From Oikopleura dioica (lineage: Eukaryota > Animalia > Chordata), in the NCBI GenBank assembly GCA_907165135.1, contig OU015566.1:5704001-5768000 (forward strand): 64,000 nucleotides of DNA. The letters run 5' to 3'. The notes under the pieces are model-generated. The model made no database searches. It was not told the origin of the DNA and worked only from the letters and a program-made list of their open reading frames with translations. Shown here piece after piece: positions 13,895 to 64,000 of this stretch (the stretch's first letter is position 1; the number at the start of each line of letters is the position of its first letter). A program made the translations under genes and the position numbers.

Positions 13895-15459
13895 ATGCAG
13901 TACGTTAATCATGAATACTATCACGTGATACTTGAGCCTACTCCCACTCCAGATACTGAAGTAAACGAGCCCGAAGCAAGGGAGACTGTGGAGTCAGAAG
14001 AAAACAAAGAAAAATACTACGTCCCGACTCGTTTTCCCAATGAGGAGCTTTCAAAAGAAGCCATGCGGAAGTACATCGCAGATCCTTGCAACACAACACT
14101 CGTTATCAAACACCCAAAAGTCGCCCAAAAGTCATATGGGCGGGAAAGACGACTCATTTGCCCACCCCCGATAATTTCTCTCGAAGGGGAGGGCTGGAAA
14201 CTCAAGCAAAAGGAGATTCACGACAGAGCCGACTACAAAGACGGAGATGAAGAAATTTTCGCGTTCATCGGCATTGATAGCGATTATCAACAACTATACT
14301 TTGGAAAAAATGACTTTTCTGTAGCTCGAACGCTTTCTGTTACCGAAACGGAAAAGAGGAGCTGCGGAAGCACCGCCAAACGTGACTTCACACTGAATTT
14401 GAAAATGTTTTTCGGGAATGGAGAAAGCTTGGGCAATTTCGAGTCCCTACCAATGTCCGTGATCGCCAAGCCGTCAAAGAAAAGAAAGGTTGCAAGAATG
14501 TCAATTTCTCCATTCTTGGCGGTGCCAAAGTGGCCCTATTCAATCGTCAAAGATCTCAGACGCTCAGAACAAAATATCTTCGCGCAGAAGGGGAAAAAAT
14601 CCTCGCATCTTCAGAAAAATGGGGCTCTTTTTACATCTATGTGGTGCCGTATGATCAAGCCGAAAGCGAGGAATTCAAAGCCGAAGAGGGGATTATCCAC
14701 TACGGGAATACTGTAAAGCTGGTCTGCACAGAAACAAGCATGGCACTGCCCTTGGCAATCATAGGCAGAGTTGACGGTACACAGGCTCTGCTTGATGAAG
14801 ACGATCCTGTTTCCGAGCTTCAGAAATGCTGTTTCCGTTTCAGAGACAATCCTATGCACTACCTTGCTGTCCAAGGTGAAAAGATCGTCCAGCATGTTGC
14901 TGTGCCCGTCTTAGGAGACCATCGAAGACACATCATTCCCGAAAACTGCGTTCTGACGATTATATCGACGCATCAAGAAAAATACACCTTTTGCGATACT
15001 TCCTCCGCCGCCGACTTTTCATTGCCGCATCCAGTTATCCAAAAAGTCCTGCTCGATGCCTCAAGAGGAAATGCCTGCTTGGATCTACTCGGGAAAAACT
15101 TCAGTTCGACTTTGAAGGTTTGGTTTGGCGATTGCGAGGCGAAGACAATCATTCAATCGGATACGAACATCATCGCAATGGTACCTGACAGGAAGTTGGT
15201 CCAGCCCGATTTGAGCCCCGAAATGGCAAAAGAAAAGCTAGATGTTCCGATCAGTCTTGTTCGTTTCGATGGAGTGATCTTCCCCTACGAAGAATTCCAC
15301 TTCACTTATTGCCCCGAAACTGACGAAACTTCGGGTGCACCTGTCGTCGACAATCCAAGCCCGAAGCGAGCAAAAATCGACGAAAATCCCACTCTCGACA
15401 CAGAAAACAACCCCTTAGCCGCGATCCAACCTAGTTCACCGACCAAAACTGACACTTAG
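13895..15459 (+). CDS. RBPJ: Divergent intronless CSL/Su(H)/RBPJ homolog with a 1-nt frameshift near 14486
   Basis: KVAQKSYGRERRLICPPP, KVALFNRQRSQT, WGSFYI, IHYGNTVKLVC, DDPVSELQKCCF, LKVWFGD and ISLVRFDGVIF give the NTD-BTD-CTD order. Confidence 0.9.
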
Positions 15460-15623: not shown

Positions 15624-18600
15624 ATGAATCGAGGACGGGGCGGAAGAAAAGGTCCATCTCACGTGGCCCCGTCAAATGTCCAGACACTCGGAGTTCGCGG
15701 ACAACAAAAGTCAAATCTACCGGCAAGTCTTCAAGCTCGTCCTCCAGGAATCCTGAGAGGCTCTTCAAGCAGAACGAATATTGGCGGAACTCGATCTGAG
15801 AGTCCGAAACTCCGTGATGCTGTGGAACAAGTCAAAATCGCGTTCGACTTTTCCGTCATCAAGAAACTGGGAGATGCGAGCTCAGAAAAACCTTCTCTCG
15901 AAGAAATGGGTAAAATGCGACATTTGTTCCTCAAGCTGAAATTTTTGCGAATCGGAAGAGATGATCCAAAAGGAGAAGTGCTAAACAATATCACGACTGG
16001 ACTGAGCTACTTGGCCATCAAGAGACCATCGTTGTTTCAAACTGACAGTGCGTTGATAGACGCGCAAGCTATCTTTTCCGGCGATGGAATTCCCCCGAGC
16101 CAAAGAACTCCGTACAGCAAGTACCACCAAATCGAGCTGTTTACTGTCAATCTTCTTTGGTCAGCCTTCAAGAGCGTCCCGAAGTGGCCACTGGAACTGG
16201 CGCGAATTTACATAGAAGACGCAGCTCGAAATCGCGACTGGGTCGATCACCCACTTTGTTTTCCATTCACTGAAAACATCAAGGCCCATTTCAAGTCGTT
16301 TCCAGTCCCGAATGAGCATCGAACCTGGTCTGTTGAAAACGCCGCTTCTGGTGTTCTAACTGAGCCGGCTTTTGACAGATTTGAGGAAGAACAGTCCCCG
16401 GCCATTCAACAAATGATCCTTGATCAATATATGCGGCGGCCAACAGCTGATCCATTGACGAGATCTCTCGTGATTCTTGGGATCGCGACAACAGGTTTCT
16501 TTGACGTCCGAAAAATGATTGTTTCGCGACTCGAAGCGATGTTTAACAATCCAAAGCTGCTGAAGCCCGGGCAAGAAATGTTCGCGTCTCTCTGCATAAA
16601 TGCTACGACTAGCAACGAGGTCGAAATCATCCACGGGATTTTGAACATCCGTCATCGTCAAAAACCAGTCAACTTCTTTCTCAACTCTTTGTCGCTCTTG
16701 TCCAAGGCGAGTCCCAACAATTTCACTTTGATGATCCAGCGCATTGTTTTCGCAGAATTCGACTCGGTCAAGAATACGCAGGGACACATGGCGATCATGA
16801 ACCATTTCTTGAACTCTGGTCAGGAGCTACGAGAAAAAACAGCGGCCGAACTTGCGCGACAGTTCAATATGGTCACTGGACAGGTCAACCAGTCACAATT
16901 TGCGCAGATAATGAGGACTCTGCGAAACACATTGCGGGAAATCAGCAAAATATCAAAATCGAATATCGGCCATTTTCTCAAGCATTTTTCAAGAGCGCTT
17001 CTTGAAGAGTGCCGTCCCGGAACACAAGAAACGCGACAAGCGACGATTGACGGACTCTTGGATCTGGCGAATCTTTGTTGTTATTTGAGAGCATCAGGAA
17101 TTCGCGATCAATTGTTGAAAGGACCGATAAGCGACGATGAACGCGCAGAACGACTCAAGTTTGAGAATGATATCGCTGATATTCAACAGCAGCAAATCCG
17201 ATGGATTCAGAATACATTCGTTCAGGTCTTCAGCCCAACAAATGATGAGATGACAGCTGCTGTGGATCAGATCATGTTCATGGGAAAGAAGGAATCGCCT
17301 GTTTCTCTCTTTGAGCCAGCCTGGCCGCCGGAAACTGATAGAACGATGATGTCATCTGCTGTGACATCTTGTGATGTTCGAGAAGGAACGATTTTGCGCC
17401 TTACTTTTATCGGTAGAAAGTTTGGAAATTCGTATGCGATGGAATTGATCTGGAAGATTATCAACAGATGCTGCGAAAAGGGCTCTCGACTGTCGGGAAT
17501 AAATGATCCAGCTCAATTAACGGAAAGTCTTCTTCAACTCGCCTGGCACGATGATCCGCCAATAAAGATCAATAGTTCTGTCGGGAAATTCGCGAGTACA
17601 GAAGCACTTTGGAAGTGGCATCTTTTGGCGCTCATTCTTTCGGCTTTTTCACCACAAGAAATAGGAAAACACGTTTGGGCCTGCTACCCGCAAATGCGAA
17701 TACTGATCACTTACTGTATCACTGGACAAATTTTACTCACTCAAGAGGAGAGACAGAAAATACTCTACCAACGACAGCGGGAAGCAGATGCAATTCTAGT
17801 TGCAGAAGCGACGAATCGAGCTTTAGAAACGATCCCAAAAGACGATTCGAAATACCTCGCTGATTTTTGCATCATTAACGCCAATGAAAACCTCCGTAAC
17901 GTTCCAACCTCTCTCCAGGAAGAAATTTCAAGTTTGAATAAAACGATCAAGCTTGATTCGCTCTTATCTGAAAACCGAGATCCAGACTTTCTCGAACTCC
18001 TAGTCAAGGAAAGTACAGTCGACAGTACTCTCGACTGGATCATTGATCTCGTCAATCAACAGCCTAAAGAGCGATTCAAGATGCTTCCGATTTCCGTCCT
18101 CGCTGAATACTTGATCCTAACGAGAATTCCGCTCAATAATGAAAGCGCAGGTGAAAATTCTCAACTGAGTGCTTCAAAGAAGCGGATCGAAGAAGTGTTT
18201 TCTCATTTGGAAGATCAGTTGAAAGAAAACCCAGAACCGTTACTCGACCATATTGTCAAGCGGCTCGCATCCGAGAGCTACACTCAGCGGAGCTGCGCGA
18301 CGCAGCTCATTGTCCAGCTTTACAAAAAAGAAGCGATGGAGGACTCGGTCATGGAATGCTCCGATGATAAACCGGTAGAGCTCAGTTTGATCCTCAGTCA
18401 TTTGCTCGTGCTGAAAAACTCGAAATACGCGCGGAAGAATTTGATAAACGCAATATACGTCGAGTCTAATTTGCAAATGATCGTTGGCTATTTGTCGCTC
18501 TTGGAGGAATTTATTCAGTTCGACAATGAAAGCTTCGAGGATGTTTTCGACCTGGCGGCTGCTCTTTCGCACTTTTTACTCCATGGCTTGCTGACATCCA

Positions 18601-21600
18601 CGCGTCACTTGCAAAACCAAAAAATTGCTGACAATAGAACTATGGTCACGTTTATTATCAAAGGTAATCCCGAATTTATCAGTCAATTCTTACCCTTTTC
18701 AAGTCTTCAATAAGATCACCAACTGGATTTTCGTCCTCAACGACGATGAGAAGATCTCAAAGAAGCTTCAAAACTGGACTTGCGAGCGCAACACCGACGT
18801 AATAACATTTTCCATGGAAGGGAGAAACATTTGCATTCCCAAAAACTTCCTCTATTCCGTCCTGATCGTCCTCTCCCTCAAATTCAACAATGAACTAGCG
18901 CTTCACTGGTTGAACGATTTCAACACGGGCTTCACATCTGAAATCAAAACTGAACTGCCTAAATGGCTGATCGAGTTTGCTTCCGGAAGCTTCTGCCCTG
19001 AAATAATCGAACTCGCAGTCAGAAAAATGAGCAAAGCTGAAATTATGAAGAGCGCTCGGTGGCACGATTTGGAAGGGGAGCATATGTCCCAGTTCCTCAA
19101 AATTGTCGACAAGAGATTCAAGGAAGACGCATCAAAGCCGAATGCTAGTAAATTTCCTTCACTGAACTTTTCCATCCGCCTGCTGAACGAACATGTCTCC
19201 GAGTCACCGGATAAAGAGGGATCTGAGCTGCTCAAAGCACTAGAAGGGATCAAAATAACCGACTCAAAAGAACCTTCAGCTTTCAAGTTTCCACAGGTCA
19301 AAAAAGAAGAGCCTAAAGATGACCAGATGGAAGCAGAAATGTCATTGACCAACGAACTAAAGAGCTACTTCGAAACTGAAAAAGTGACTTCAGCGAGACT
19401 TCATTCACTCTTGAAGAAGATTTCTTCAGCCGAAGATCTCTCTCCAGCTATTGCTACGCTGATGCCCCTGATTGGTAAGAACAACTCTGCTGTGTACACA
19501 ACTCACATTTCTGGCTTCGGAAATATCATCAGGCGGATCGGAACGACTTTGCAGAAGAAAAACAAGCTCATCGATCTGGAAGACTTTGTCCCGATTATGA
19601 CTCGGCATCTCTCAGAAGAACGCGTCGCGCAGAATCCGAAGCTGAATACGCTTCGTCTTATTGCTTTGGATTTCCATCGAAAAATCTTCACAAAAGCCAA
19701 GCCAGCTCCGAAACCAAAAGAAATCCCAGAAACCGTCGCCGTCAAATCGTTGGTTGCTCTTATCAACAAAGAGAGGACAAAAACCAACCGGGTTTCTTTG
19801 CAATCATTGGACACTTCTCCTGATGAAGACCAGCTGATCGGTTATCTCAGTGACATTTTGATAAATGATTATCATCGAGTGTTTTCTGAGACGAATGAGG
19901 ACGATTTGAAGCTGTTTTTCAATGCATCATCTCAACAGCTACAGGTAATTTCGGAAATTCGATGGTCTCTTCGTTGATTTCTTTATTCTCAGTCCATTTT
20001 TCTTTCTACTGCGGATTGGAACGTCATTCAAAACGCCATATCATTCCTCTTGTCCGAACGCTCCGCAGATGTGAATCACAACTCCGTTCTCGACTTTCTC
20101 TGGGCCTCCGAACGTATCCGGCGACTTTGGAAGGGACGAGAACAGCCAGCAGAGAAGTCGAAAGAATACATCATCAAAATGACAGTGCCACAGGTCGAAA
20201 TGTATCTTCACCACTTTTTGGCCGGCTGCGCAGATGAGTCGGAGATGGAGACAAGACTTCCTCAGCTTTTCCACTTTCTTCGTGGAGCAAAGATGAAAGG
20301 TAGCTTATTCAGAGCATTCATCAAATACTTAGTAACTTTCCTCTAGACTCGCAATTTATAAATCTTCGGAAGCACGTGGAATCTCTTAAAGTCGGCTCAC
20401 AAGACCTTCGAGGCAAGCTTGGAAATCTTCTCTACCTATTCCGTCCAGCAGGGCAAGAAGGCACCAAACTCGTTGGAACAGAATCTTCGGCTTGTTCCGT
20501 CGATAAAATCGTCTACCGAGTCATTCTTGATCTGGCAGCAATTGGAGAGTCGCAAACTATTGGAGATAAGATGAAAGATGCGTTTTTGTTCTGCGTTTCT
20601 TTGACATCTACGCATCCGCATCTGCTCCTTCGCCACTTGAATCTGATGGCCAGGTTTGCTCATTACAGTGGACATCTTCTTAAAAGATATCTCAGACTTC
20701 TGAAAGGCCGTTGCCACAATGAACTGAAAGATTTCCGCAATCAACGGCACATGGATTACTTCACCAACATCAGCGCAGTCATGTGCCACCTAGCTCCGCA
20801 TATGATGGAAGAGCGATACCTCCCTACCTTCAAGGACATCATCGCAGAATGCCTCGAGTTCCTTAGAGTCTATCCAAAGATTGCGAGACGGCAGAGTCGC
20901 CCGACGACGAATTCGATTTTGGCAATGATTAAAAAATTCTTGGAGTTGGATATTGTGAACGGCTTGAAGTTCTTAGAAGGTTACACGAGTCTCTGGAACG
21001 ATTTACATGGAGTGTATGGAAATGACACGAGAGATGTTCAGCTGTATTATTCTGTGTTCGTGGCGAAAGTGCCTCCATACCATGGTGGTAAGTTTAGTCT
21101 AAGAAAATGAGGGTTGGGCAGAATTTTTCAGTCATTTATCATTTCTAGCTCCGGAACAAGTCCTCCTCGCAATGCAAAACGAACACTTCCGCGGTTTCAG
21201 CCCAGAAGAGCGCGCTCATCACGACCACAACCTCAAGAGCTATCCAAATATGGTCATCGAAAGCATTCGTGCACTCCATCTCGCGCTTGATCAATTCGAT
21301 CGCGGTCCGAGAGCGATTATTCCTTTCGAACAGGGTGTTCTTGACGCATTGACATGCATTCTTCCCGACGCACGAGCCATGGCGTTTGATATTTTGCTGG
21401 AAATTCTTCGAGTTGAACCGACGAAAATCAAGCTGTATTACCAAAGAATGCTCGATGCTATGGATCAAGGTACGATTAGAACAACTACTTATGTTTACTA
21501 ACTTTGTTTAGGCCCTGAAATTCTGGAGACTGAAAGAGTCATGAAATTCACAATTCTAGCGATGACGAAAAGCGATGAAATCCTCAAGGCCGTTTTTCAT

Positions 21601-45722: not shown

Positions 45723-46913
45723 ATGATAGAGAAAGATAAAATTAAACTTTGGCTCCATGATTTGATACCAAAACTCGAAAGAAAAACTTCAAGAAGTGCA
45801 AAATGTAGGCTTATTAGATCTGTGGAACGACAAGTATTCAACGAAAACCATTTTATTGCTTCTACATGGGTTTCTTTTCAATTCAAAATGAGCAACAGGG
45901 GAATTCTTACAGGCTATGTTTTCAACAAGAACAATAAAGGAGGATACAAACTTCTTTCTTCTTGGCCGGCAACTCCGTTCCAAAATCACCTGATCCAGCG
46001 TTACAGATATTTGCTTGGCAAATATATTTTCAAAAATCAGATTCGAGCGGAAACAGAATTATGGACAGTTCAAACAGAAAAAAAGAAAGCTGGGAATTCA
46101 CCTCAATCAGGTACTTCGCCCATCCATTTCCTAGATTCAGGAGGAGAAGCGCTTATATGCAAAGAAGATGTCGCCTTCAATGCTCTCTACAGGGTTCATT
46201 ATTTTGATCCGTTTCTTTTCACAGAAAAGTTCTGCGATGAAATTCGATATCGAATCAACTTGGCTTCGGAATTTCTGGAAGCTTCAGATTCACGAGACCA
46301 AAAAGAAAATTCAATTCCTGCTCATAAAAATGTACTGAAACATATTGCAAATATTGAATTCTTTCACCATTCTGATAAAGATTTCGTCGAGTGCCTTGGT
46401 TGGATAACAATCATGGAAGAAGGTGGTAAAGACTTGCGATATTTTCTTCGAAAGAATGAATTCGACATTAAAAAAAGAAAAGATTTGGCGATTCAAATAC
46501 GTGATGGAATTAAGTACCTATTTGACATAGGACTTGAGCATAAAGATCAAAAATTGGAGAATATTGTCCTATTTGGGCCGAATAAAATTCCAAAATGGAT
46601 AGATTTTGGCTTGATGTATGATCATACTGGCAGGGAAAGTTATCGGCGAATGGGTTACGTGAGAAGAGGGAGCAAATTTCGACGACATCAATGTTTAGAA
46701 AGTGGGACTCCTGGAGCTTGTAGCACTCACCAAGTTCTTGGTGGGCGTGTTAAACAGAAAAACACGGTGCCTATCGGTAAGCATCCCTTTTTCTTTCTTT
46801 TTTGCGACTGGAAAACTGCATGGACTCTTCTTTTGATGCCTATTGATGAAGATAAACGAGCGATGTTTACCAATCTGTTAAATCGTTGCAACTGGGGTCA
46901 GCACATGAGCTGA
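45723..46913 (+). CDS. Divergent protein kinase-like ORF, possibly degraded at the 3' end
   Basis: FLDSGGEALI (G-loop-like), HKNVLK, IMEEGGKDL, HKDQKLENIV and WIDFGL. Confidence 0.75.
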   Translation: MIEKDKIKLWLHDLIPKLERKTSRSAKCRLIRSVERQVFNENHFIASTWVSFQFKMSNRGILTGYVFNKNNKGGYKLLSSWPATPFQNHLIQRYRYLLGKYIFKNQIRAETELWTVQTEKKKAGNSPQSGTSPIHFLDSGGEALICKEDVAFNALYRVHYFDPFLFTEKFCDEIRYRINLASEFLEASDSRDQKENSIPAHKNVLKHIANIEFFHHSDKDFVECLGWITIMEEGGKDLRYFLRKNEFDIKKRKDLAIQIRDGIKYLFDIGLEHKDQKLENIVLFGPNKIPKWIDFGLMYDHTGRESYRRMGYVRRGSKFRRHQCLESGTPGACSTHQVLGGRVKQKNTVPIGKHPFFFLFCDWKTAWTLLLMPIDEDKRAMFTNLLNRCNWGQHMS

Positions 46914-50781: not shown

Positions 50782-51279
50782 CAGATTCAATTTTAAAAAT
50801 AGTTATTTTGGGAAAAATTGACAATTGAATTTGAGAACTAAGGCCCAAAATAGCTGATTTTTCAAGCTGAAAACTGTAGATTAGCTTGCCCATTACGAGT
50901 GTACCCCCAGCCTCGAATACAATTATTTCATGATGTTGACATTGGACAAAGCTTGTCCAGAAAGAAGCCCAGTTCGGATGACCTCGATGGATTCACTAGC
51001 TTGGCGCGTCGGGGATGTGAACATTTTGAAATACATGAATGTCTCGGAAATCGAATTCAAATCTCTTCGAAATGTTAAGAAAAAAACATGAAAGGGCAAA
51101 TCATTCTTTTTTAGGGAAGTTTCAGATTTTGGTGACGGTCGAAAAAAATTTTTTTCTTGTTTTGAGTCAATTATGAAAGAGTACTAAAAATGAAGCATTT
51201 TGGTATGTTTCTCGAGTTCTATCTCTTACGAATCTCGGAGATATGGCCTTCTGAAAGTTGAAAAACATGCTTTCTTATA

Positions 51280-51885
51280 TTGGTGATTGTGACTCATCCA
51301 CATTCTGAATCTTAAATTTCTCTGCGGATTCTGATTCAGCAGTGTCTGAACTAGCATGGATTTGAATTTCACTCGCCCACGATCATAATTATGGCGAGAA
51401 ATCATCATTTTCCTAGAGCCCTTTTTCAGTAACGAAGAAGAGTGAAATCCGGGCAAAAATAGGAACGCGCAGCGACAAAACGGCCTCAAAATCAGGCGCG
51501 TAAAATAAAGCTCATCCCATTTTCCAGCCTGATTCCCATTTCTGAGGTCGTGCAGCTACAAAACGGCCTCGAAATCAAGCAGGAAAGAAATTTTCTCATC
51601 CCATTTTCTTCCCATTTGACTACAACTATGATGATCATAGAAATTGAACACTGTTAGCTTTTTTTAAGTTTACTGGATTTATGAAATACATTTCAGCGTA
51701 ATTATACCTGGACCATCATAGAAATTTAAAATCAGCAGAAAAAAGCTTTAAACTTGACCCTTTCATGCTTCCGAAAATCACTTCCGCTTGCGATTCTAGA
51801 GCCGAAAATTGACGAAATTTATAAGAATGGCATGCTCGTGGGCTATCAAATTGAAGCTTAGAGCATTTTCAGTCATTTAAAAGAG
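51280..51885 (+). repeat. Dispersed repeat, left copy (candidate TIR of a large element)
   Basis: Closely similar reverse complement of 63503-64000, with an extra block of about 110 bp near 51655-51765. Confidence 0.9.
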
Positions 51886-51963
51886 GAACCGAGGCCAAGC
51901 GCGATTAAAAACTGCCTGTAAACGACCAGTAAAAATTGGTAAAAATGTCAAAAAAGCATGCTA

Positions 51964-52848
51964 TTTCTCGAACTCCTGGTCAAGGAAAGTACAGTTGACA
52001 ACTGTTTTTTTATGTTTCCGACAACTGGGGAGTCTATGTTCTCAGACCAGAGAAGTCGCAGAGAGTCCCCAAGGGTACCAAAATGTAGCTTAGGGTCTAA
52101 TTTGTGGCGTAGGTACACTGAGCAAATGTCAATGTCACGTGATCTTTCACAAATGACGTCATCAACTCGGAAATACCCGATTTCGCCAATTTTAACCTCA
52201 TTTTGGGAGTCGATGTTCTCAAAGTAAAATCATCGTACAGCTTCTCAAAGGGGCTCAAAAAAGAGCTGAAGGTCTACTCTGTGGCGTAGGGGGGTTAAGA
52301 TAACCTCAGGATGTACTCATCCCTTTTTTACAGAGGGTCGAAAATGAGGTCGGAAACATAAAAAAAACAGTGTCAGTGCACTCTACAGGATCATTGATCT
52401 CGTCAATCAAAAGCCCAAAGAGCGATTCAAGATGCTCCTGATTTCCGTCCTCGCTGAATATTTGATCCTAACGAAAATTCCTCTCAATAATGAGAGAGCT
52501 GGCGAAAATTCTCAACTGAACGCTTCATAGAAGAGGATCGAAGAAGTATTTTCTCATTTGGAAGATCAGTTGAAAGAAAACCCAGAGCCGTTACTTGACC
52601 ATATTGTCAATTGGCTCGCATCGGATAGCTACACTCAGCGGAACTGTGCGACGCTGTTTATTGTCCGGCTTAATAAAAAAGAAGCGATGGAAATTTCGGT
52701 CATGGATTGCTCCAAAGATCAACTGGTAGAGATCAGTTTGATCCTCAGTCATTTGCTCGTGCTGAATAACTCGAAATACGCGCAGAAAAACTTGATAAAG
52801 GCAATTTACGTCGAGTCTTATTTGTAAATGATCGTTGGCTATTTGTCG
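51964..52848 (+). pseudogene. Duplicated INTS1 exon fragment (source about 17988-18498), interrupted by a MITE
   Basis: Colinear nucleotide similarity to INTS1 (FLELLVKESTVD...EDQLKENPEPLLDHIV...IYVES) with new stop codons. Confidence 0.9.
52001..52371. mobile_element. MITE with about 22-bp TIRs inside the INTS1 fragment
   Basis: ACTGTTTTTTTATGTTTCCGAC / GTCGGAAACATAAAAAAAACAGT; TSD not resolved. Confidence 0.75.
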
Positions 52849-53030
52849 TTGTACTGGTCGAAACGCATTTGTTGTTATAGGAGCCGCTTTGGTCAGATTT
52901 GTTCAATACTAATCTTTTATAATATACAATAGTTATTTATTTCTTTTGATGACATAGTGGACATCGAGAATTCAGTTTTGATGACGATTTCTATTTAAAT
53001 TTCTACAATTTATGCAAGACGAATATCGTT

Positions 53031-56000
53031 ATTTTCTAATCGAACTTCTTCTCTTCTTTGCATTTCTTCAAGAATGTGGTCAATCTCGCTGTCCGTGAAC
53101 TTGTCTTCTAGATCCTTGTTTATTGTTGATCGGAGAGTCTCCATGGATACAACCTATTGGAATTGATTATAAATTCACAAAAATTGCATTACCTCTATCG
53201 GTAAATTTTCTATGAAAAGATCATTTAAGGTTGAAACAAAATGTTCACGCCGGGCATCAGAAATTTTCGGTGTCGCTCGCAAAGGTTGCATGAGGATTGT
53301 TTCTTCCTGCATAAAATCAGGAGTGTGAACGGTGCTTGAAGTTGATTGTTCGGAAAACGTCGATTTTGATGGAATATTTCGCCTAATGGAATCAGCTTGA
53401 CCGGATAGCCCTTAAATATAAGGTTTAATTGATTATATTTGATTTTTTTTCTTATTTTTTTCATATCAAGAATTTTCTTACGTTGACTTCGTCTTTTTGG
53501 TGCGAGATTTTCGACTGATCCGAACGGCATAGAAAAGTCTAGTTTTCGCTTGCGTTGTTTTGGAACTTCTGCATTTTCTTTATCATCAGACGATGTCAGC
53601 TTTAGCACCGGATGATCGATGAGTCTCAATTGGTCGGTCATGATTGATCGGATACTGTCCATCTCCACTGGCTTCGGATGCTGAGAGAGTTCTTGACGGC
53701 ATATTTCGAGCAATAAGGGAGCGCAGAATTCACTTGACGATGGAATATTTTTAGCAAAGGAAATATCCCAATTCTCGTAATCTGTCAGGGGAGCATCTGA
53801 CTCAATCAATGCAGCAATCCGGTGGCTTATAGTGATGAGTCTATGGCGCTCTCGTTGATCCATTCTATCCAGAGAAGTGTCAAGAATCTGGATCTCATAC
53901 TGCTCGCTGCACACTCGAATAAGCGTGAGATGATGGAGTTGATTCGTCGATGTTGGTTTTGTAACAACGGGCACAAGGATCAATGATGTATCCTGATCCG
54001 TTCTTGATGAAAGGAAATCGTCGGCGAGGGCGGTGATATCTTGAACCATCGGTAGAATTATCACATCCTTATCGTTGTTTGAAGAATTAAGCTGATTGAT
54101 AATTTTTGCGATGTCGGAATCACTTGTAAAGGTAAAAATCTATTTTTTGAGTGTTTTTTAGAAAATTTTGCTGAAAATGATTTTTACCATCCCTGTATCG
54201 GTAGCTCATGATGTGTTCATCTTTTGCCACATTTCTTAAGCTCATTGTCTGCTTTTTCTTGATTGTGACTTCGACTTGCTTTCCACTTTCAGCTGATTTC
54301 AGTGAGTATTGATGCCCAACCTGTTTCTTACAGTCGTGAATTCGTCCAGCTCGGCAAAACTCGCAGGTACAGACGTGTGATTTTACGTCGAAAACTCCGG
54401 ACTCGAACTTGATCATACTAGCGGAAGATATCGACGGTATTCGCACTAGATCGTTACGTTTTGATGCGACGAGATCAGAAGGTATCTGGGCGAAGATTCT
54501 TCCCTTTTGCAAGCTTTCAATTTGATATACATTTTTCATATAAAAATTTTTTTTATGAAAATGAATAATGAAAAAAAAATTTTTTGAAAGCTTTCCTGAA
54601 ATTCTTCTTTATCGTCGCGTTCATCATCTTTTTCACTCTCCCTCTCCTGGCAATATTTGATGGCATCCGGTATATTGCTCGCCAGATTGTAAAGCGTTGC
54701 CTTTCGCAGATAATTATTGACGGCGGTGTGCGCACCGTCCACGGATGATTTTCCGTGGACGGGCGTTTTGTAGACAAGACACGTTGGAATATCCACATCA
54801 GTGTCCCTGAGCTGGTTGATGATTTCGTAGCTCTTAAACTCGCTAAAAGGCTCATTTTTTGATAATCTTTAGAAGATACTTTAAGTAATAATCTTATTTA
54901 ATGAATTCAAAATTCGAAAATTAAGAGCCTATCCTGGGTGCATTATCGGAAATGCGCATCAGCGAGTCAAATGTGAAGCCTCTCTGTCGCAACTCTTGCA
55001 GAATGATGCCTTCTGAGTATCTGACGTTTCGATTGCATTTGTGAGAAGCAAAGAAGTGAAAGTAGTATTTCATCGGCTTCCCATCAATGGTGAATTTGAC
55101 GACGGAGGTGAGGACGTTTATATTTCCTTCCGAAGACAAAAACGCACTTTGAGTTTCAGTATTGGCTTTCAAGCGTGTTTTCGAAGCATAGTCCGACTCC
55201 ACTTGAAGAACGCCAGCTGGGACAGGGCTATCGTCGAGAGTCTTCAGCTCTTGCTCGTTTTCATTCTTGTCAACCCAGTGCTCCAGGTAAGATCGAAATC
55301 GGGCTTGAACGTGTTCAAAAACTTCCTTGACGGTTATTTTTCCGCTGCCAACTTCAGTCTCACTGATGAAACTACAGCGAGGGTCACCCTTATCAACAGA
55401 TTCGAATCGGGAGACTCCAATTTTCATCGAGCCGTACTCATTGATCAGTGGCGCCCAGTGATTTTCGATTTTTTCTTGTATCCATTTGTCTACTCCTGTG
55501 CAATCTTGATGAAGACAGTGCGAGCATCCAGTTGTTTTCTTCATATGTTGAAAACAGCTTCCGTTGCGATTACGGATGCAATCCACAATTGTTGTCGCAT
55601 TCGGCCCAAGACGGCATGTCGATTCGTTCAGGATCACATCGATAGAAAGCGTCGCTAGTTCGGCACCAATAGCTCCGAGACGCTCGTTGGCGCGCGCTGT
55701 CTCGCCGATTCGGTTGATTGCATCGATGAAGTTGTTCAAGTTGGTGTGCTTTTAACGGGTTATGATGATAAAACGAAAATCAGAAAAGATGATTTTATGA
55801 TCATGTTTGATTCAAATAAATTTAGGAGAGCAATGAATTCAATAATTAACCCTTTCCTTTAGACACGCACAGATTCGCCTGCTTCGATCGTGTTCTTCAT
55901 AAATGTAGAATGGGCACATATCCTTGAAATGCTTGAAACTCAGATGTTCGTACTCAGGAAACGCTGCGAGGAATGAGAAATAGAGCGTTTTCAGCGGCTT

Positions 56001-56903
56001 TTCAAGCACCAATCGCGGAGACTCGAATTTCTCCAAACCACGCTTAGCAGTTTTTGTCAGGTGACAGTTCTTTTTGTAGAACGCGAAGATAGTATCATCC
56101 TTCACATTTTTCGTCGAGATTGTTACATATCCCCTTTTGCTCGGATCACAGAAAGAGTTGCTTTTCAAGAATTGGTCGAGGTTGATCAAAAGCTCCATCG
56201 AGACATTTCGCAATTGATCCTTGGAGCGATAGGCCTCATTTTTCGCGTTTTTCATCTTGAGAACTCTATCCTGTCTTCTTCCAAAGAATTTCGAAAGCCC
56301 GGAGAGGATTTTTTTGCTCGGTTTCGACGGCGTCAGGTTTTTGATGATCTGAGTTTTGACTGATTTCGGCAAGTTCGCAGTCGCAGTTTTAAAAGCTGAC
56401 GCTTGCAACAGTTGTGCATTAAGACTCTCAACTTCAGATGAGGCGCAGTTTCCATCGATGAATTGATACAACAATCGATTTTTTTCGGCCGTCGTCAAAA
56501 GGCTTATAGCAGTTCGGACTTCTTCCTCAGCTTTTTTAATCAATGGTTCTCTGACGCTCGCTTTGAAGCCGCTTGAGGCATCAGAAGGGTACGATTGCGC
56601 CTTTGATTCCGCTTTGGATGAAGATTGTCCTTCTTGAGATCCTTGAGATTCTGCCGCTTGGTCGTCATTGCCGAGTGAACCTTGAGAGTGCGCCACTTGT
56701 GACGGAGGAGACATATCGCCTTGATTCATGCCAGAGTCGGTCGTTTCCAGCTGATCGACGTCATCTTGATTGACATCGATATGAGTTTCTTCGTGGAGTT
56801 CAAGATGCTCTCGTGGGACGCGAATCCAGCATTTTCGGCAAATCGAAAGTTGGCATTTCGAATGATGTTGATTTGATTGAAGTCCTGCTAGTTTATTCTT
56901 CAA
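53031..56903 (-). mobile_element. Spliced DDD-type transposase gene (Sola-like signature) with a C-terminal Ulp1/C48-like protease region
   Basis: LKTLYFSFLAAFP..LSFKHFKDMCP..RRICAC, ESDYASK...ETQS, ISDNAP|EFK, HGKSSVDG and VCTCEFC..G...C; then ILVPV..HHLTLIRV..ILDTS..FCAPLLL. ORFs are separated by short introns. Confidence 0.7.
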
Positions 56904-57039
56904 TTCGTAGCAGCATTTCCAATATTGCTATAAATTTATATTTAATCAAGCAAATATATACGCTTTTTTAAAGCTTTTAAAAAAGAAGCCGCACGCGGCT
57001 ACAATGACGCGCTTTTTTAGGTTATGGAGGTACTCTAGC

Positions 57040-57512
57040 CAACTTGCGCCCTATTAACACTAAAACACCATATTTTGTGGAATCGGCAGAAAATTCTTAG
57101 AATTCCTTTTTCGGTCCGATTCTAGAGCCAATTGACGAAATTTAGGAGTAAGAGTAAAGTTGACCAATCAAATAGTTGCTCAGAAAATTTTGAGTCATCC
57201 TTTAATCAATATTTCAGAAGAAACAGTCCCAAACGTAGTCAATCGAGGGGTAAAATTATGAAAAAATCGCATAAATTGATGAAATTTTATTCAGTTTTAA
57301 CCGGTTGGTTTGGCCGCGATCGGGGTCGATTCCTCCTTTAAATGATGGGAAATATTCTGAGGTCTCACTTCTACCCTAACTCCCAAATTTGGTCATTTTC
57401 TGGCTCTAGAATCGGATCGGAAATGGAATTTTCGAAAACTTAAAGGGTCAAAATTCTTAAAATTTCCTACTGATTCAAAAAAGGTATGGTGTTCTAGGAT
57501 TTTTAAAGCGCT
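57040..57512. mobile_element. Degenerate MITE or imperfect inverted repeat
   Basis: 57040-57165 is an imperfect reverse complement of 57360-57512 and shares the GATTCTAGAGCC motif with the 51.3/63.5-kb repeat. Confidence 0.6.
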
Positions 57513-57561
57513 AGAAAACCTCAACAACTTTAAAAAAGCGCGTCTCTCGAGTCGGCATTTT

Positions 57562-58770
57562 TCAAAAACAACTTACGTTTGGGAACTTTTGGTGTCTCTG
57601 ATCCATTTCTTTCACAATGACCTCGACTTCATGATCTCTCGAGCACGAAGATAAGTGGTTGTTGTAAGATTCAATCGATCCGAAAGTATCTTGGCATCCA
57701 TGGCAAAGCTTCCCAGAGCACGAAGAGCGGTGTTTTTGGTAGATCTTGCTCGAATCACCGGCTCTTCCAACATAAACGTAGTCAGCACATCTGTCACACT
57801 GCTTGTATTTTAGGATTGGAAAGCCGATTTCGATCTCCCATAGTCCATTTATCCGACTTCCAAAGCGTGCAGTTCGCAATTCATGAAGGAGCGCTTTCTT
57901 GATGAATTGATGAATCTCTGTGACGGTAAAGACTTTTTGCTGTCTTTTGCAGATCATTTCCAGGGTCGTGCGCTGTCTGCCTTCATTCAATTGTTCGATT
58001 GAAAAAACAAGGTTTTTCAATTCGTCGAACTAAATCATATTTTTAAATTAGTAAGTAGAGATTTTTGACAAAGCTTTGTAAAAACCAAAAGCTTTCAGCC
58101 TTTGATTATCGAAACGAGCAAAAATAGCTGAATAGATAGGGCTTTAGAAGAAATTATATCGATGTTATTCCACCGAATATTATCCCCTTAAGTTTTCACT
58201 ATATCTGAAAAAATGGCTTTCTTACCGATTGAATCTTATTTTCGACCAATGAGTTGAGCAAAGCAGCGTCTTTTGGAAATAAGAGCTGAAGCTCACGGCA
58301 ATGTTGAGTTGCTTTGTGGCGTAGTTTGAGAGGAAACACCATCGAATCGCCGAGCTTCTTCTCCTTCATGAGCGCTTTTTGGTGAATTTTCTGGAGCCGA
58401 TCAGGGAGTAAATGCGACAGAGCCTCTTCCGCCACATCATTTGGTGGAAAAGCATCGTCACTCGTGCTCGATGTTGTTAGACTGTCTCTAGGTAATGGCT
58501 CGGCTTCAAACAGCTCGCTGATGAAGTCACCACGCAAAAAGGATCCGATCGGGGAAAACTGGTCGAATTGAAGACCACTCTCGTCGACAAACGGTATTTC
58601 ATACTGGACCGGATTTTCGGCTGAAAGGCAAAACTCAGGCTGAGTTGCCATCATAACGTCGAGATCGGCAGTCAAATTTTCTTGATAATATGAAGCGGCA
58701 GCGGCCTGTTCAGGAGGACTGAAAAAATATAAATTTTATAATGTTCTATCATCTTACATAGTCATGAATT
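57562..58770 (-). CDS. Uncharacterised multi-exon gene with a C-terminal CxxC/HxxxC zinc-binding region
   Basis: ORFs 58199-58675 and 57562-58020; CDRC...HRSSC and CHGC...HLSSC. Confidence 0.5.
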
Positions 58771-58789
58771 GTATCTTTGATAGTTAAAG

Positions 58790-60920
58790 GTGTCACCTAA
58801 GCTTGGGGTTTCACGCGCATACTTTTGGATATGTATGGGGTCTCATGCGCATTCATGCTGTTTTTATAATTTGCGCGCATTTTATTCAGTAATTTATGTC
58901 ATTTTTGATAGTTAAGGGTGTCACGCGCAGATCTGGAATAACATTGGGATGTAACGCGCATGTTTTGATTCAGTAAGGGGGCTTCACGCGCATTCATATT
59001 GTTTTCATAATTTGCACGCATCTTTAAAGTTTTTATCTAATTTTTGGTAGTTAAGGGTGTCGCGCGCATATCTTGAATAAGTTTTGGGAGTCACGCGCAT
59101 GTTTTGATTGAGTAAGGGGGCTTCACGCGCATTCATGTAGTCTTCATTATTGGCGCGCATTTTATTCAGTAATTTATGTCATTTTTGATAGTTAAGGGTG
59201 TCACGCGCAGATCTGGAATAACATTGGGATGTAACGCGCATGTTTTGATTCAGTAAGGGGGCTTCACGCGCATTCATATTGTTTTCATAATTTGCACGCA
59301 TCTTTTAAGTTTTTATCTAATTTTTGGTAGTTAAGGGTGTCGCGCGCATATCTTGAATATGTTCTGGGAGTCACGCGCATGTTTTGATTTAGTAAGGGAG
59401 CTTCACGCGCATTCATGTAGTCTTCATTATTGGCGCGCATTTCATTCAATTATTCATGTCATTTTTGATAGTTAAGGTTGTCACGCGCAGATCTGGAATA
59501 ATATTGGGATGTAACGCGCATGTTTTGATTCCGTAGGGGGCTTCACGCGCATTCATATTGTTTTCATAATTTGCACGCATCTTTGAAGTTATTTATCTAA
59601 TTTTTGGTAGTTAAGGGTGTCGCGCGCATATCTTGAATATGTTCTGGGAGTCACGCGCATGTTCTGATTTATGAAGGGGGCTTCACGCGCATTCATGTAG
59701 TTTTTCATTATTCGCGCGCATTTCATTCAATTATTCATGTCATTTTTGATAGTTAAGGTTGTCACGCGCAGATCTGGAATAATATTGGGATGTAACGCGC
59801 ATGTTTTGATTCCGTAGGGGGCTTCACGCGCATTCATATTGTTTTCATAATTTGCACGCATCTTTGAAGTTATTTATCTAATTTTTGGTAGCTAAGGGTG
59901 TCGCGCGCATATCTTGAATAAGTTTTCGGAGTCACGCGCATGTTCTGATTTATGAAGGGGGCTTCACGCGCATTCATGTAGTTTTTCATTATTCGCGCGC
60001 ATTTCATTCAATTATTCATGTCATTTTTGATAGTTAAGGAAGTCACGCGCAGATCTGGAATAACATTGGGATGCAACGCGCATGTTTTGATTCAGAAGGG
60101 GGCTTCACGCGCATTCATATTGTTTTCATAATTTGCACGCATCTTTGAAGTTATTTATCTAATTTTTGGTAGTTAAGGGTGTCGCGCGCATATCTTGAAT
60201 AAGTTTTGGGAGTCACGCGCATGTTTTGATTTAGTAAGGGGGCTTCACGCGCATTCATGTTGTCTTCATTATTCGCGCGCATTTCATTCAATTATTCATG
60301 TCATTTTTGATCGTTAAGGTTGTCACGCGCAGATCTGGAATAACATTGGGAGTCACGCGCATGTTTTGATTCAGTAGGGGCCTCACGCGCTTTGATATAG
60401 TGTTTATAATTCACGCGCATTTTATTGAGTAAATTATCTCATTAATGATAAAAAAGGGATTCACGCGCATGCCTTGAATAAGTTTGGGTAGTCACGCGCA
60501 TGTACTCAATCAGTATTGGGCCTAACGCGCTTTAAATAAGTTTTCATAGTACGCGCGCATTTTATCCAGTAATTTATCTTGTTTTTAAGTTAAAGGTGTC
60601 ACGCGCATTTCTTGAATAAGTTTTGGTTGTCACGCGCATTTTTTCAATCAATATGGGGCCTTACGCGCATAGATATAGTGTTCATAATTCGTGCGCATAT
60701 TATTTAGTTATTAATCTAATTGTTTATATTTGAGAGTGTCACGCGCATATCTTGAATGAGTTTGGGGTCTCACGCGCATGTATTGAATAAGTATGGGGCC
60801 TTACGCGCATTTTATAGTGCTCATAATTCGTGCGCATTTTATCTGTTTTTAATAAGTAAGGTTGTTGTTGAATCAGTAAGGGGTCTCACGCGCGATCACA
60901 TCGTTTTCATAATTTGCGCG
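58790..60920. repeat. Tandem satellite with higher-order structure (about 35-bp ACGCGCA monomers, 139/141-142-bp units, about 280-bp dimers)
   Basis: GTTAAGG anchor at 58911, 59050, 59191, 59330, 59471, 59610, 59752, 59891, 60033, 60172 and 60313. Confidence 0.95.
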
Positions 60921-60972
60921 CAATTAATTTTTTTCTTTCATTGATTTGATATCTCGGGCCGATTCACAAAAC

Positions 60973-61332
60973 TTACATGATGCGGGTTGAATCATCAAAG
61001 TCCCGAAGATGACTTTCCATTTGGTTGGCCGACGTCGTAGGAAAGACTGCAGCTGGTTGCAAACTTGTCACTGATGGTGTGCAGACAGACGTTGAAGTTG
61101 GAGTGGGTAGTCGGACAGCTGGTGGTACATAACGAGGCTGATGGTAAGAACGTGCCCACATTTGTCGTGGCGAATTGTATTCAATTCTGGATAGATCAGA
61201 ATTAATACGCTGTGCATTATCAGCAACCAAATTCCATCTAAGCGTTTGAAGGCGCTGTTCACGGCATGAACAGCTTTCGGCATCGTCGGTAGTCTGGGAG
61301 AAATCCCGAAGCGTATAGAGCCTCATCTTCAA
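60973..61332 (-). CDS. Short uncharacterised ORF
   Basis: 119-aa ORF only; no recognised motif. Confidence 0.25.
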   Translation of the reverse strand: MKMRLYTLRDFSQTTDDAESCSCREQRLQTLRWNLVADNAQRINSDLSRIEYNSPRQMWARSYHQPRYVPPAVRLPTPTSTSVCTPSVTSLQPAAVFPTTSANQMESHLRDFDDSTRIM

Positions 61333-61989
61333 GCAGCAGAATTGTTGTAGTCAATGTCGCCAGTGTCGATAATGTTGAAGACTATAAAACCTTGAAAATA
61401 ACGATAACATATTAAACGCAAGTTTTTTCAAGTGATCTCTTCCAATTTCAAAAATTTCGTCGACTTTTTTAATGAGGGGTTCGAGAAAACTTAGACATAG
61501 CAGAATCAGAAAAAAATGATGAAATATTTAGCAAGATCTGGGTTTTTGGCGACTATTAATGTCTTTAGAGATGTTTTTAGAGGTAATTCCCAATTTAAAT
61601 TTATAGGAGCCCCCCATCAAGAATTGTGAAAAAGGGCTGTTAAGTGAAAGCTTCTCTTGGAAACTTTCAAAGGTAGACCCTTAATTTTAATTGCATCCTT
61701 AAGATCAAACCCTCGACTGCAATCGTTCCCCTTATGATTATCTTTCAATATCAAACTCAAGGTTATACAGGCCCTTAAAGGTAAGGTTACTAAGTGAAGA
61801 TTTTTTTCGGGGTTTTAATGAGGGTAGAGCCTTAATTTTTTCTCAGGGTAAAGTTTAGGCCCTAAGCTACTTTCGAGAGTTTTTAGTCAATGAACTTAAG
61901 GAGGACAAACCCTTTAAAGATATATAAGGCGAAAATTCAGTAGGTAGCATTTGAAGTCAAAAATGAGCACTAGAAACTTTCGAGCGTCC

Positions 61990-62610
61990 GGAAAGGGATG
62001 AATACTCCAGCCTATCAGTGCGCGCCTAATTCCATATTGTAGAGCAGGTTCCATTGATGATTTAAAAAAAAAAACTTCGCGGGCCCGGAAATCGTCAAAA
62101 AACCTCTTATCTAGTTTTGTAGAGCTCGTCAAGACGAGTCGAATGATATATCAAAGTCAATTTCAGCTCGTAATCACATATCCTGCCTAGTTATCAGCGA
62201 AAAATTAAAAATTTAGTGTATTTTGTTGTCGCTCGTTCCTAATTTCTGGCCCATTTCCAGTCCCATTTCCATTGGAAAATGAAATATACTGATAAACTCG
62301 GCTGGGTAGATGATGACGGGCTGAAATTTTTTGGAACATTTTCCGGGGTCAAACGTTACCGCAGCTATTCTAGAACAAAAACGGCGGCGGTCAGAAAATT
62401 TTTGATAAGCCACCTTCTTATCACTTAGAATTTTCAGGACTTTGATATATCATTTGACTCGTCTCGACGAGCTCTACAAAACTAGGTTAGAAGTTTTGAG
62501 ACGATTTCCGGGCCGGCGAAATTTTTTTTGAAATCAGCATTCTATCTAATCATTGCCCGAAGAAGCTCGAAAAATGAAGCAAAATTGAGTACTCATACCT
62601 TTCCGGGGCA
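61990..62610. mobile_element. MITE-like inverted repeat
   Basis: GTAGAGCTCGTCAAGACGAGTCGAATGATATATCAAAGTC (about 62119) pairs with GACTTTGATATATCATTTGACTCGTCTCGACGAGCTCTAC (about 62438). Imperfect pairing extends outward to CCGGAAAGG. Confidence 0.75.
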
Positions 62611-63110
62611 CGTAAACCCTAGTTATCCCCTTAATTATAATTAAAAAAGAAAAAACTAAGGACCTTTATCAAAAAAATGATGAAAATAACTAATTTTAGA
62701 AAGGTTTCTGACTGACAATCATTTTTTCTTTTGAAACTTACCTTTGAAGTCGTTCCGTTTTCTTTCTTGGTCGTCTTCCAGTTGAATCAGTTTTAGGAGC
62801 AACGTTCCAGTAGGAGCCAAGCGAATTGTCCGATTGCTTGATTTGAGCAAAGAGACTTTGTTGGTTAAGACTTTCGTTTGATGATTGTCTTTCTCTTCTT
62901 CAATTTTCAAAAAATTGAAAAAAATTTGATTTCCAGCTTTTTTTTCGTCTGTCTGCTCTTCTGAGAAAATTGAATTCAAAGCGAGCGAAATTTTCCGCTT
63001 AAACGGAACAGAACTCGGCAGGGTACGTCAGCTGACCTAGCTGATAAAATCAGCTGATTTTATGGAATTATAATTTCAAAAATCTGATTTCACACAAGAC
63101 ACAATTTTTC

Positions 63111-63502
63111 ATGCCTTGGGTCCAACGTGGATGGATGAACATTCGCATGTCTAGCGATGATCTTACAAGAAACTACGAACTTAATGACTATACCGAGATT
63201 CTTTTCTCTAAAGATGTAACATCTGAGATGGTATGGAATCCACTGAAGGAAAGCCTCAATCAAGTTGAAGATCTGGGGGACTTCGCTCATCGATTGTTTT
63301 TCTGGTGGCAATTTCATGGATACCCGCGCCTTCCTTTGAACCGGTATCTATTGCTCAACTGACCTACACAGGTAACGCATCGAATTACCCGGAAATTGTT
63401 GCTGCTCAAATCTGCCCAGATAAATCTCGTGACAAAATATTCGATTTCATAAAACATAGTCGAGGAATCGAGGAAGAGTTTAGGCGCCGCAGTTCGATAT
63501 AA
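63111..63502 (+). other. Uncharacterised coding fragment(s)
   Basis: Two overlapping ORFs in different frames; no recognised family. Confidence 0.2.
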
Positions 63503-64000
63503 TTCCTATTTTAAATGACTGAAAATGCTCTAAGCTTCAATTTGATAGCCCACGAGCATGCCATTCTTATAAATTTCGTCAATTTTCGGCTCTAGAATCG
63601 CAACCGGAAGTGATTTTCGGAAGCATGTCAGTGTTCAATTTCTATGATCATCATAGTAGTAGTCAAATGGGAAGAAAATGGGATGAGAAAATTTCTTCCC
63701 TGCTTGATTTCGAGGCCGTTTTGTAGCTGCACGACCTCAGAAATGGGAATCAGGCTGGAAAATGGGATGAGCCTTATTTTACGCGCCTGATTTTGAGGCC
63801 GTTTTGTCGCTGCGCTTTCCTATTTTTGCCCGGATTTCTCTCTTCTTCGTTACTGAAAAAGGGCTCTAGGAAAATGATGATTTCTCGCCATAATTATGAT
63901 CGTGAGCGAGTGAAATTCAAATCCAGGGTAGTTCGGACACTGCTGAATCAGAATCCGAGAAGAAATTTAAGATTCATAATGTGGATGAGTCACAATCACC
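63503..64000 (-). repeat. Dispersed repeat, right inverted copy, running off the window end
   Basis: Reverse complement of 51280-51885; the inner ends of both copies coincide at ...CAGTCATTTAAAA.AGGAA. Confidence 0.9.

Follow-up and report, generated by a model that had tools for sequence, protein, structure and literature searches.

A 13,055-bp element at positions 51114-64168 of a 64,000-nucleotide stretch of DNA from the planktonic tunicate Oikopleura dioica (the window, C4:5704001-5768000) is one transposon, bounded by long terminal inverted repeats (TIRs) and inserted as a unit, and taken as a whole it is probably a single cut-and-paste transposon like those of the rare Sola superfamily. 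This reading builds on features that were observed directly, namely the TIRs, their termini, 3-bp target-site duplications (TSDs), the structure of the gene, homology and the single-copy state. The element would be an autonomous-type class II DNA transposon with a single multi-exon gene, the predicted protein of which would have C2HC zinc fingers in its N-terminal part. Behind these would come a Sola-type DDD core, RNase-H-like and closest to Sola2, then a Cys cluster and a degenerate Ulp1-like domain, with a winged helix of the MCM3 type as the tail. The transposase would bind the long TIRs, probably recognising and cleaving them within the first ~45 nt, a stretch conserved in a sister family, and the element would have been excised and then reinserted by a 3-bp staggered cut. 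Catalysis, the binding sites and any present activity are predictions from sequence. An earlier note on this DNA had proposed one large composite, cargo-carrying element; the single unit is upheld by the TSD and by the lack of any solo arm in the genome, whereas cargo carriage is unproven for a single copy, and the label "composite" finds no support if it means a pair of mobile units, one on each side.

Element limits and terminal inverted repeats

All coordinates are window positions unless a contig is named. A further 10 kb past the window end was also read, and the genome searched was the O. dioica OKI2018_I69 assembly (64.28 Mb, 19 contigs), in which the element lies on chr1. The features that define its limits are the following.

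51111-51113, no strand: left copy of the TSD, TTA, with the right copy at 64169-64171, outside the window; ends set by terminus pattern search
51114-51888, plus strand: left TIR, 775 bp, starting GGGAAGTTTCAG
63503-64000, continuing to 64168 past the window, minus strand: right TIR, 666 bp in total, without the left arm's 51654-51763

The repeat search paired inverted outer arms at 51282-51653 and 63629-64000 (97%) and inner arms at 51750-51888 and 63503-63641 (94%). In the extended sequence, blastn aligned the outer block 51113-51653 with 64169-63629 (542 nt, 97.4%) and the inner block 51764-51888 with 63627-63503 (98.4% over 125 nt), and 110 bases of the left arm (51654-51763) have no counterpart in the right arm. 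A 542-nt arm match at 97% is far above chance. The earlier note had described an inverted repeat of at least 600 bp beginning at 51280; the arms turned out to be longer still (97-98% identical), with the true left end at 51114 and the right end at 64168, 168 bp outside the window. Extension across both ends, the check which that note had suggested, showed that TTA borders the element on both outer sides. The first 60 nt are identical in both arms, and the left TIR also holds two ~57-bp direct subrepeats (51469-51524 and 51552-51609).

A genome-wide search with the terminus pattern (25 nt, up to 3 mismatches) returned exactly 6 sites, against 0 for the reversed control, and these form three inverted pairs, each with a 3-bp TSD; no solo arm was found anywhere in the 64 Mb. 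Since the terminus occurs only in these three inverted pairs, the arm does not form a high-copy repeat of its own, and the pairs together with TTA outside both arms therefore give the 13-kb unit the footprint of a single insertion. The family includes short relatives at C1:15661651-15663482 (1,832 bp) and C5:5408416-5410136 (1,721 bp), flanked by TTT on both outer sides; their arms are ~84% identical to 51110-51640, and TIR sequence is all that they have in common with the 13,055-bp element. The outer 540 bp of the arm are thus specific to three elements and are not a high-copy miniature inverted-repeat transposable element (MITE), and neither the repeat search nor flank reading found TIRs or a TSD belonging to a single arm. 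Among the 12 elements read, 11 have a 3-bp TSD (3/3 in this family, 5/6 in the sister family and 3/3 of the GAC-type MITEs described below); a 4-bp TSD was rejected, as most of these elements do not fit it.

The inner ~240 bp of the arms (51657-51898; 63503-63627) share 71-82% identity with the arms of a palindromic high-copy MITE of ~585 bp, which has GACGTGC termini and its own 3-bp TSDs (AAT, ATA and AAA), and in the window arms this homology ends exactly five bases before the MITE terminus. The earlier note had allowed that the whole arm might be a high-copy MITE with which the internal genes are not associated elsewhere; MITE relationship was found in these inner ~240 bp only. The homology may be a trace of ancient nesting, and the ~585-bp MITE may be mobilised by another Sola-like family with GAC ends. 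Copies of this MITE lie, for example, at C2:11630879-11631471, C1:7195337-7195930 and C5:11935681-11936275. A ~2.2-kb palindromic element at C4:11763072-11765265 matches the TIR subrepeat region (~51457-51581) in its outer parts and has a complete GAC-type MITE at its centre; it could represent a further non-autonomous form, nested or related. Just outside the left end, 51050-51094 is repeated at C4:5678606-5678647 (91%), so that the insertion may have taken place in or next to another repeat.

The transposase gene and its probable Sola2-like core

The gene lies on the minus strand, with exons at 53013-58717 and an annotated first exon at 60976-61326, in agreement with the spliced transposase gene proposed earlier. 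Its parts are listed below in the direction of transcription.

60976-61326, minus strand: annotated first exon, putative; 117 amino acids (aa), unique in the genome, no recognised domain
58226-58717, minus strand: annotated exon 2; in-frame ATGs near 58651 are a possible alternative start
57577-58029, minus strand: zinc-finger exon (open reading frame (ORF) 57562-58020)
56928-57576, minus strand: 649-nt intron, GTAAGT...TTTATAG, holding a GAC-type MITE arm fragment (57385-57451)
55851-56927, minus strand: exon encoding a C2HC-type zinc finger plus a helical region; collinear with P0004, a metagenome protein, over residues 379-712
54934-55748, minus strand: exon with predicted catalytic blocks 1 and 2; Asp codons 55191-55193 and 54945-54947
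54637-54843, minus strand: exon with the predicted third catalytic block, HGKSSVDG; Asp codon 54737-54739
54129-54595, minus strand: Cys-cluster exon, CxCxxC...HxC from 54371, placed after the catalytic core as in homologues
53480-54073, minus strand: exon with a putative degenerate Ulp1/C48-like domain
53013-53408, minus strand: last annotated exons, MCM3-type C-terminal winged helix; Pfam WH_MCM3_C, six-frame match 53022-53159

Seven long open blocks run from 58735 to 53228, separated by short gaps except for one pair 640 nt apart. Canonical-looking splice sites were recognised from 58225 to 58030 (GTAAGA...TTTAG) and from 54636 to 54596 (GTGAAA...TTTCAG), and most exon junctions have good splice sites; one junction is ambiguous and one needs a GA-AG intron, so that the intron at 54843-54933, between catalytic blocks 2 and 3, is probably non-canonical. 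GA...AG introns are a known oddity of O. dioica. One exon is 100% identical to the database protein Oidioi.mRNA.OKI2018_I69.chr1.g1528 [Oikopleura dioica]. The annotated gene product (P0009, 1543 aa) maps to the window in nine collinear blocks (61326-60976, 58717-58226, 58029-57577, 56927-54900, 54868-54596, 54506-54129, 54073-53480 and 53408-53013, where the match 56927-54900 reads through the intron between the blocks 56927-55851 and 55748-54934). P0004, an intronless 1461-aa protein of an ENA metagenome, is collinear with P0009 over ~950 aa (E 1e-52), and since this collinearity includes the zinc-finger block 57577-58029, the element holds one gene. The separate zinc-finger gene of the earlier note is accordingly an exon of the transposase gene, as the mapping of P0009 likewise indicates. 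The genome contains one gene-bearing copy of the element.

The predicted catalytic blocks read ESDYAS / ISDNAPSEFKS / HGKSSVDGAH with the spacing D82-D39-D, and those of Sola2_DFa-2 read MDFKEN / WSDGAKHFKS / HGKSDVDRH with the spacing D87-D43-D (PMC3627910, Additional file 3). With Sola2_DFa-2 alone as the reference, the shared pattern is DxxxN/K, SD[GN]AxxFKS and HGKSxVDxH; two multi-residue blocks in the right order and at the right spacing would be very unlikely to arise by chance. The Sola superfamily was described in Bao et al. 2009 and the dictyostelid Sola2 transposases in Bao & Jurka 2013 (PMC3627910). Further likenesses to Sola2 are the short, A/T-leaning target duplications and the large size, dictyostelid Sola2-Fanzor elements measuring 10-15 kb (PMC3627910). 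In contrast, the TIRs are 500-775 bp long here and 12-22 bp in the dictyostelid elements (PMC3627910), and zinc fingers, an Ulp1-like domain, an MCM3-type tail and an internal tandem array set the present element apart. On balance, it is likely to belong to an O. dioica lineage of Sola2-like transposons that are large, have long TIRs and leave a 3-bp footprint, as a divergent member present in a single copy.

In the exons, P0009 and P0004, Pfam scans recognised no family of transposases or proteases at E values up to 1-10, which is explained by the reported lack of a Pfam counterpart for Sola cores (PMC5751038). A full-library HMMER search with the 272-aa core exon gave 4 matches, comprising unnamed ENA proteins and P0002, the latter rejected as a spurious match to a bacterial DUF11 repeat protein. 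The word-based protein search found a 78%-identical fragment as its sole match, and the search with the P0004 core returned P0004 itself alone. DUF7869, the sole Pfam lead from Atlas, yielded nothing in the genome, and sequence searches of the PDB gave no significant match.

Other superfamilies were considered and rejected. Zisupton/KDZ has an 8-bp TSD in the case of Zisupton, against 3 bp here, and no KDZ domain was found by Pfam. PIF/Harbinger elements have a 3-bp TSD of the form TWA and a second, Myb-like gene; the TSD length fits, but the TSDs read include AGA, TCA, CAT and ACT, no match to DDE_Tnp_4 was found, and the supposed second gene is a transposase exon. CACTA/CMC was set aside because the termini start GGGAAG / GGTAGAAG and no Transposase_21-type Pfam match was obtained; Ginger was rejected as well. 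Fusions of a transposase with Ulp1 are known from the KI-MULEs of plants, Ginger1 and Zisupton. The present protein resembles these in having an Ulp1-type cysteine-protease-like domain joined to, or beside, a cut-and-paste transposase, but it has no MULE, rve or KDZ Pfam match, and its protease domain fails the Pfam model.

The SUMO protease of the earlier note survives in part. For the exon 53480-54073, an Atlas lead pointed to Ulp1/C48 at 0.89, and the candidate triad codons are His 53930-53932, Asp 53879-53881 and Cys 53723-53725. In a three-way alignment with the sister-family exon and P0004, His, Asp and Cys are in register and the oxyanion Gln is replaced by Ser here. Pairwise similarity of the exon is not significant, its fold model is unusable (pLDDT 44.8), and no Pfam match to Peptidase_C48 was found for the exon (E up to 10) or for P0009 (E up to 1), whereas the equivalent exon of the sister family matches Peptidase_C48 with E 1.9e-6 (28.3 bits against a cut-off of 20.7). 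The exon thus appears to encode a degenerate Ulp1-like domain of doubtful activity. Residues 1472-1540 of P0009 match WH_MCM3_C (31.9 bits, cut-off 27), and the sole other match in the genome is at C1:7988189-7988332. The tail and this C1 locus are 55% and 34% identical in two pieces and have an intron at about the same place, and a search for a DNA-level match of the tail to the genome found none. These features suggest that the tail may be an old genomic capture of the last two MCM3 exons.

Tandem array, sister family and passenger DNA

The following features lie inside the element, outside the TIRs and the exons.

51964-52848 (51964-52000 and 52367-52848), plus strand: decayed INTS1 exon fragment, split by a MITE, 89% identical to 17988-18497
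51996-52378, no strand: ~385-bp MITE nested in the INTS1 fragment; at least 15 genome copies, the best 93% identical
58811-60839, plus strand: element-private tandem array with periods of ~31, 139 and 280 bp
61594-63426, no strand: block of nested repeats, namely a ~340-bp MITE with dozens of copies (61594-61937), a palindromic MITE (62050-62543) and low-copy repeats (62705-62880 and 63108-63426)

The array, which the earlier note had described as a 2.1-kb higher-order satellite, comprises 7.3 copies of 280 bp (88% matches), each made of two ~139-bp halves with ~31-bp sub-periods, and its sequence occurs nowhere else in the genome. If exon 1 is genuine, the array is intronic, within the first intron of the annotation; otherwise it precedes the gene on the upstream side. 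The motif CACGCGCA is present in 30 copies, all on one strand, and none was found outside the array in 74 kb, TIRs included; its use as a mark of the TIRs was therefore rejected.

The core exon has six paralogous places in the genome (about 27-30% aa identity), and the sister family comprises six complete elements of 10,860 to 13,635 bp with ~500-bp TIRs, the termini of which start GGTAGAAGTCTCC.

Sister copies: C1:1226606-1237465, C1:9120147-9133763, C2:2757732-2771366
Sister copies: C2:5049829-5063436, C3:2658287-2671911, C5:4897297-4910926

Five of these copies are ~13.6 kb long, and one, of 10.9 kb, has a 2.7-kb internal deletion and lacks the N-terminal transposase exons; the two copies that were compared are 98-99.5% identical. 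Perfect 3-bp TSDs flank five of the six (AGA, TCA, CAT, TTT and ACT), the sixth being imperfect (AAA/TAA). The first ~45 nt of the termini can be aligned between the two families, and over the first 60 nt the alignment score is 15, compared with a mean of -9.4 (standard deviation 4.3, maximum 6) in 2000 shuffles. A genome search for copies, as the earlier note had suggested, found the same internal order in this copy alone, but it did find the transposase homologue between homologous termini in six sister copies, and a homologous gene is therefore tied to homologous termini elsewhere. The sister family shares the homologous transposase, block order, 3-bp TSD, similar size and the side of the gene relative to a one-orientation array. 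It differs in being multi-copy and young, in its Pfam-significant Peptidase_C48 exon and TGAGC-based array, and in having no INTS1 fragment and no detected match to the MCM3-type tail. Its array, with TGAGC runs, is ~1 kb long and has periods of 31-36 and 135-139 bp, so that position and periodicity are conserved between the two families and the motif sequence is not. Judged from these two families, the array appears to be a shared architectural feature of the transposon group. It is conceivable, though doubtful, that it is a functional module of the group rather than junk, an idea suggested by the fact that families whose cores are <30% identical both keep a 1-2 kb one-orientation array on the same side of the gene, in each case with a motif period of ~31-36 bp nested in a higher-order period of ~135-140 bp. 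The motifs of the two arrays are family-private, and both are absent from the TIRs.

The INTS1 fragment and the nested MITEs of the earlier note were found again at the positions listed. The parent sequence, 17988-18497, lies in a 1029-codon ORF with the Pfam domain INTS1_RP2B-bd (RPB2-binding domain). Relative to it, the copy has 53 mismatches, a 1-bp deletion that causes one frameshift, and two stops, with 29 non-synonymous and 17 synonymous codon changes; the two stops and the deletion mark it as a dead fragment. The fragment matches the parent gene alone, 33 kb away, and pick-up in place, or before a local hop, appears more likely than chance because ~70 kb represents about 0.1% of the 64-Mb genome. 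The nested MITEs, at least three in number, entered the element later and independently. Together with the INTS1 piece, and probably the MCM3 tail, they are best regarded as DNA accumulated inside it. Like Pack-MULEs and Pack-TIRs, the element has host gene pieces (an INTS1 exon and the last two MCM3 exons) inside TIRs; unlike these, which are usually non-autonomous and multi-copy and thereby allow carriage to be demonstrated, it is of autonomous type and single-copy, with the INTS1 parent 33 kb off. Neither the Rfam nor the tRNA scan gave a match in the element.

Elsewhere in the window, host genes lie upstream at 13895-15459 and 15624-19977, and comprise a Su(H)/CSL-type gene (LAG1 DNA-binding, BTD and TIG domains) and INTS1, the fragment donor. 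A 396-codon ORF with a partial protein-kinase domain (45723-46913) lies ~4 kb to the left of the element. A 1,224-nt inverted repeat (7884-9107 and 9658-10881), with 100% complementary arms 550 nt apart, holds 128-bp tandem units (8269-8652 and 10143-10526); either a very recent origin or an assembly effect would account for it.

Alternative explanations and significance

Several points weigh against a mobile Sola-like transposon. The single gene-bearing copy gives no direct sign of recent movement, and for the same reason the joint travel of the inside with the ends is unproven. The intactness of the reading frame depends on the database gene model, with its GA-AG intron and ambiguous junction, and the Sola2 match consists of motif blocks recognised by eye in comparison with one published sequence. 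The TSD is 3 bp here, whereas Sola2 is reported to make A/T-rich TSDs of 4 bp, and the AlphaFold models (pLDDT 59.8 and 44.8) are too poor for use. In a different and rather unlikely explanation, the element is immobile and the transposase is a host-retained single-copy gene, domesticated or stranded, between relic TIRs. This would fit with the annotation of the single-copy gene as an ordinary gene, with an inside that has had time to gather three or more MITEs and a pseudo-fragment diverged by 11%, with the loss of Gln from the Ulp1-like domain, and with the 78%-identical exon fragment in an ENA assembly, presumably from another Oikopleura lineage. However, arms that are still 97-98% alike with identical 60-nt termini, together with a sister family that is young and multi-copy (98-99.5% identity), argue against it. 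The transposase gene may nonetheless be moving from a transposase toward a host gene.

The inner arm segment raises the question of a nested origin, in which a foldback-like element with GGGAAG ends received, at its centre, a Sola-like element that had GAC-type ends and long TIRs resembling the ~585-bp palindromic MITE family. The resemblance of the inner 240 bp to the GACGTGC MITE arms, ending five bases before the MITE terminus, is what such an event could leave behind. In the C1 and C5 relatives, however, traces of the inner segment occur in both arms at the same spacing, and outer and inner parts therefore formed one TIR before the 16% divergence of the copies; in the right arm a deletion has removed the junction, which makes an inner TSD unreadable. 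This origin is improbable, and equally so is its sequel, that the inner ends decayed and the compound moves, or moved, by its outer ends. A far more remote prospect is that two independent repeat insertions bracket unrelated genes, satellite and fragments that form no single element. Part of the arm is indeed related to a high-copy MITE and several unrelated MITEs are nested inside, but the outer 540 bp occur six times in 64 Mb and always as inverted pairs, single arms lack TIRs and a TSD, TTA flanks the pair and not each arm, and six sister copies have a homologous gene between homologous termini. A single Sola-like cut-and-paste transposon thus accounts best for the locus.

Known transposon biology is not overturned by this element, which is an unusual variant rather than a new element type. 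The combination of long TIRs, a 3-bp footprint and a protease-fused transposase was not described for Sola in the literature searched. The locus adds a second family, an array of conserved architecture and host-gene fragments, including gene-fragment pick-up next to the donor. As a second independent transposon-private satellite, the array allows a role for such arrays to be tested by comparison; if they do have one, this array could regulate the element by binding its own zinc fingers or a host factor, seed small RNAs or heterochromatin, or be a transposon-borne cradle of new satellites. The genome of O. dioica is among the smallest of animals, and 44% of its repeats were left unclassified in the genome paper (PMC8008620). 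The two families indicate that very large Sola-like transposons make up part of these unclassified repeats.

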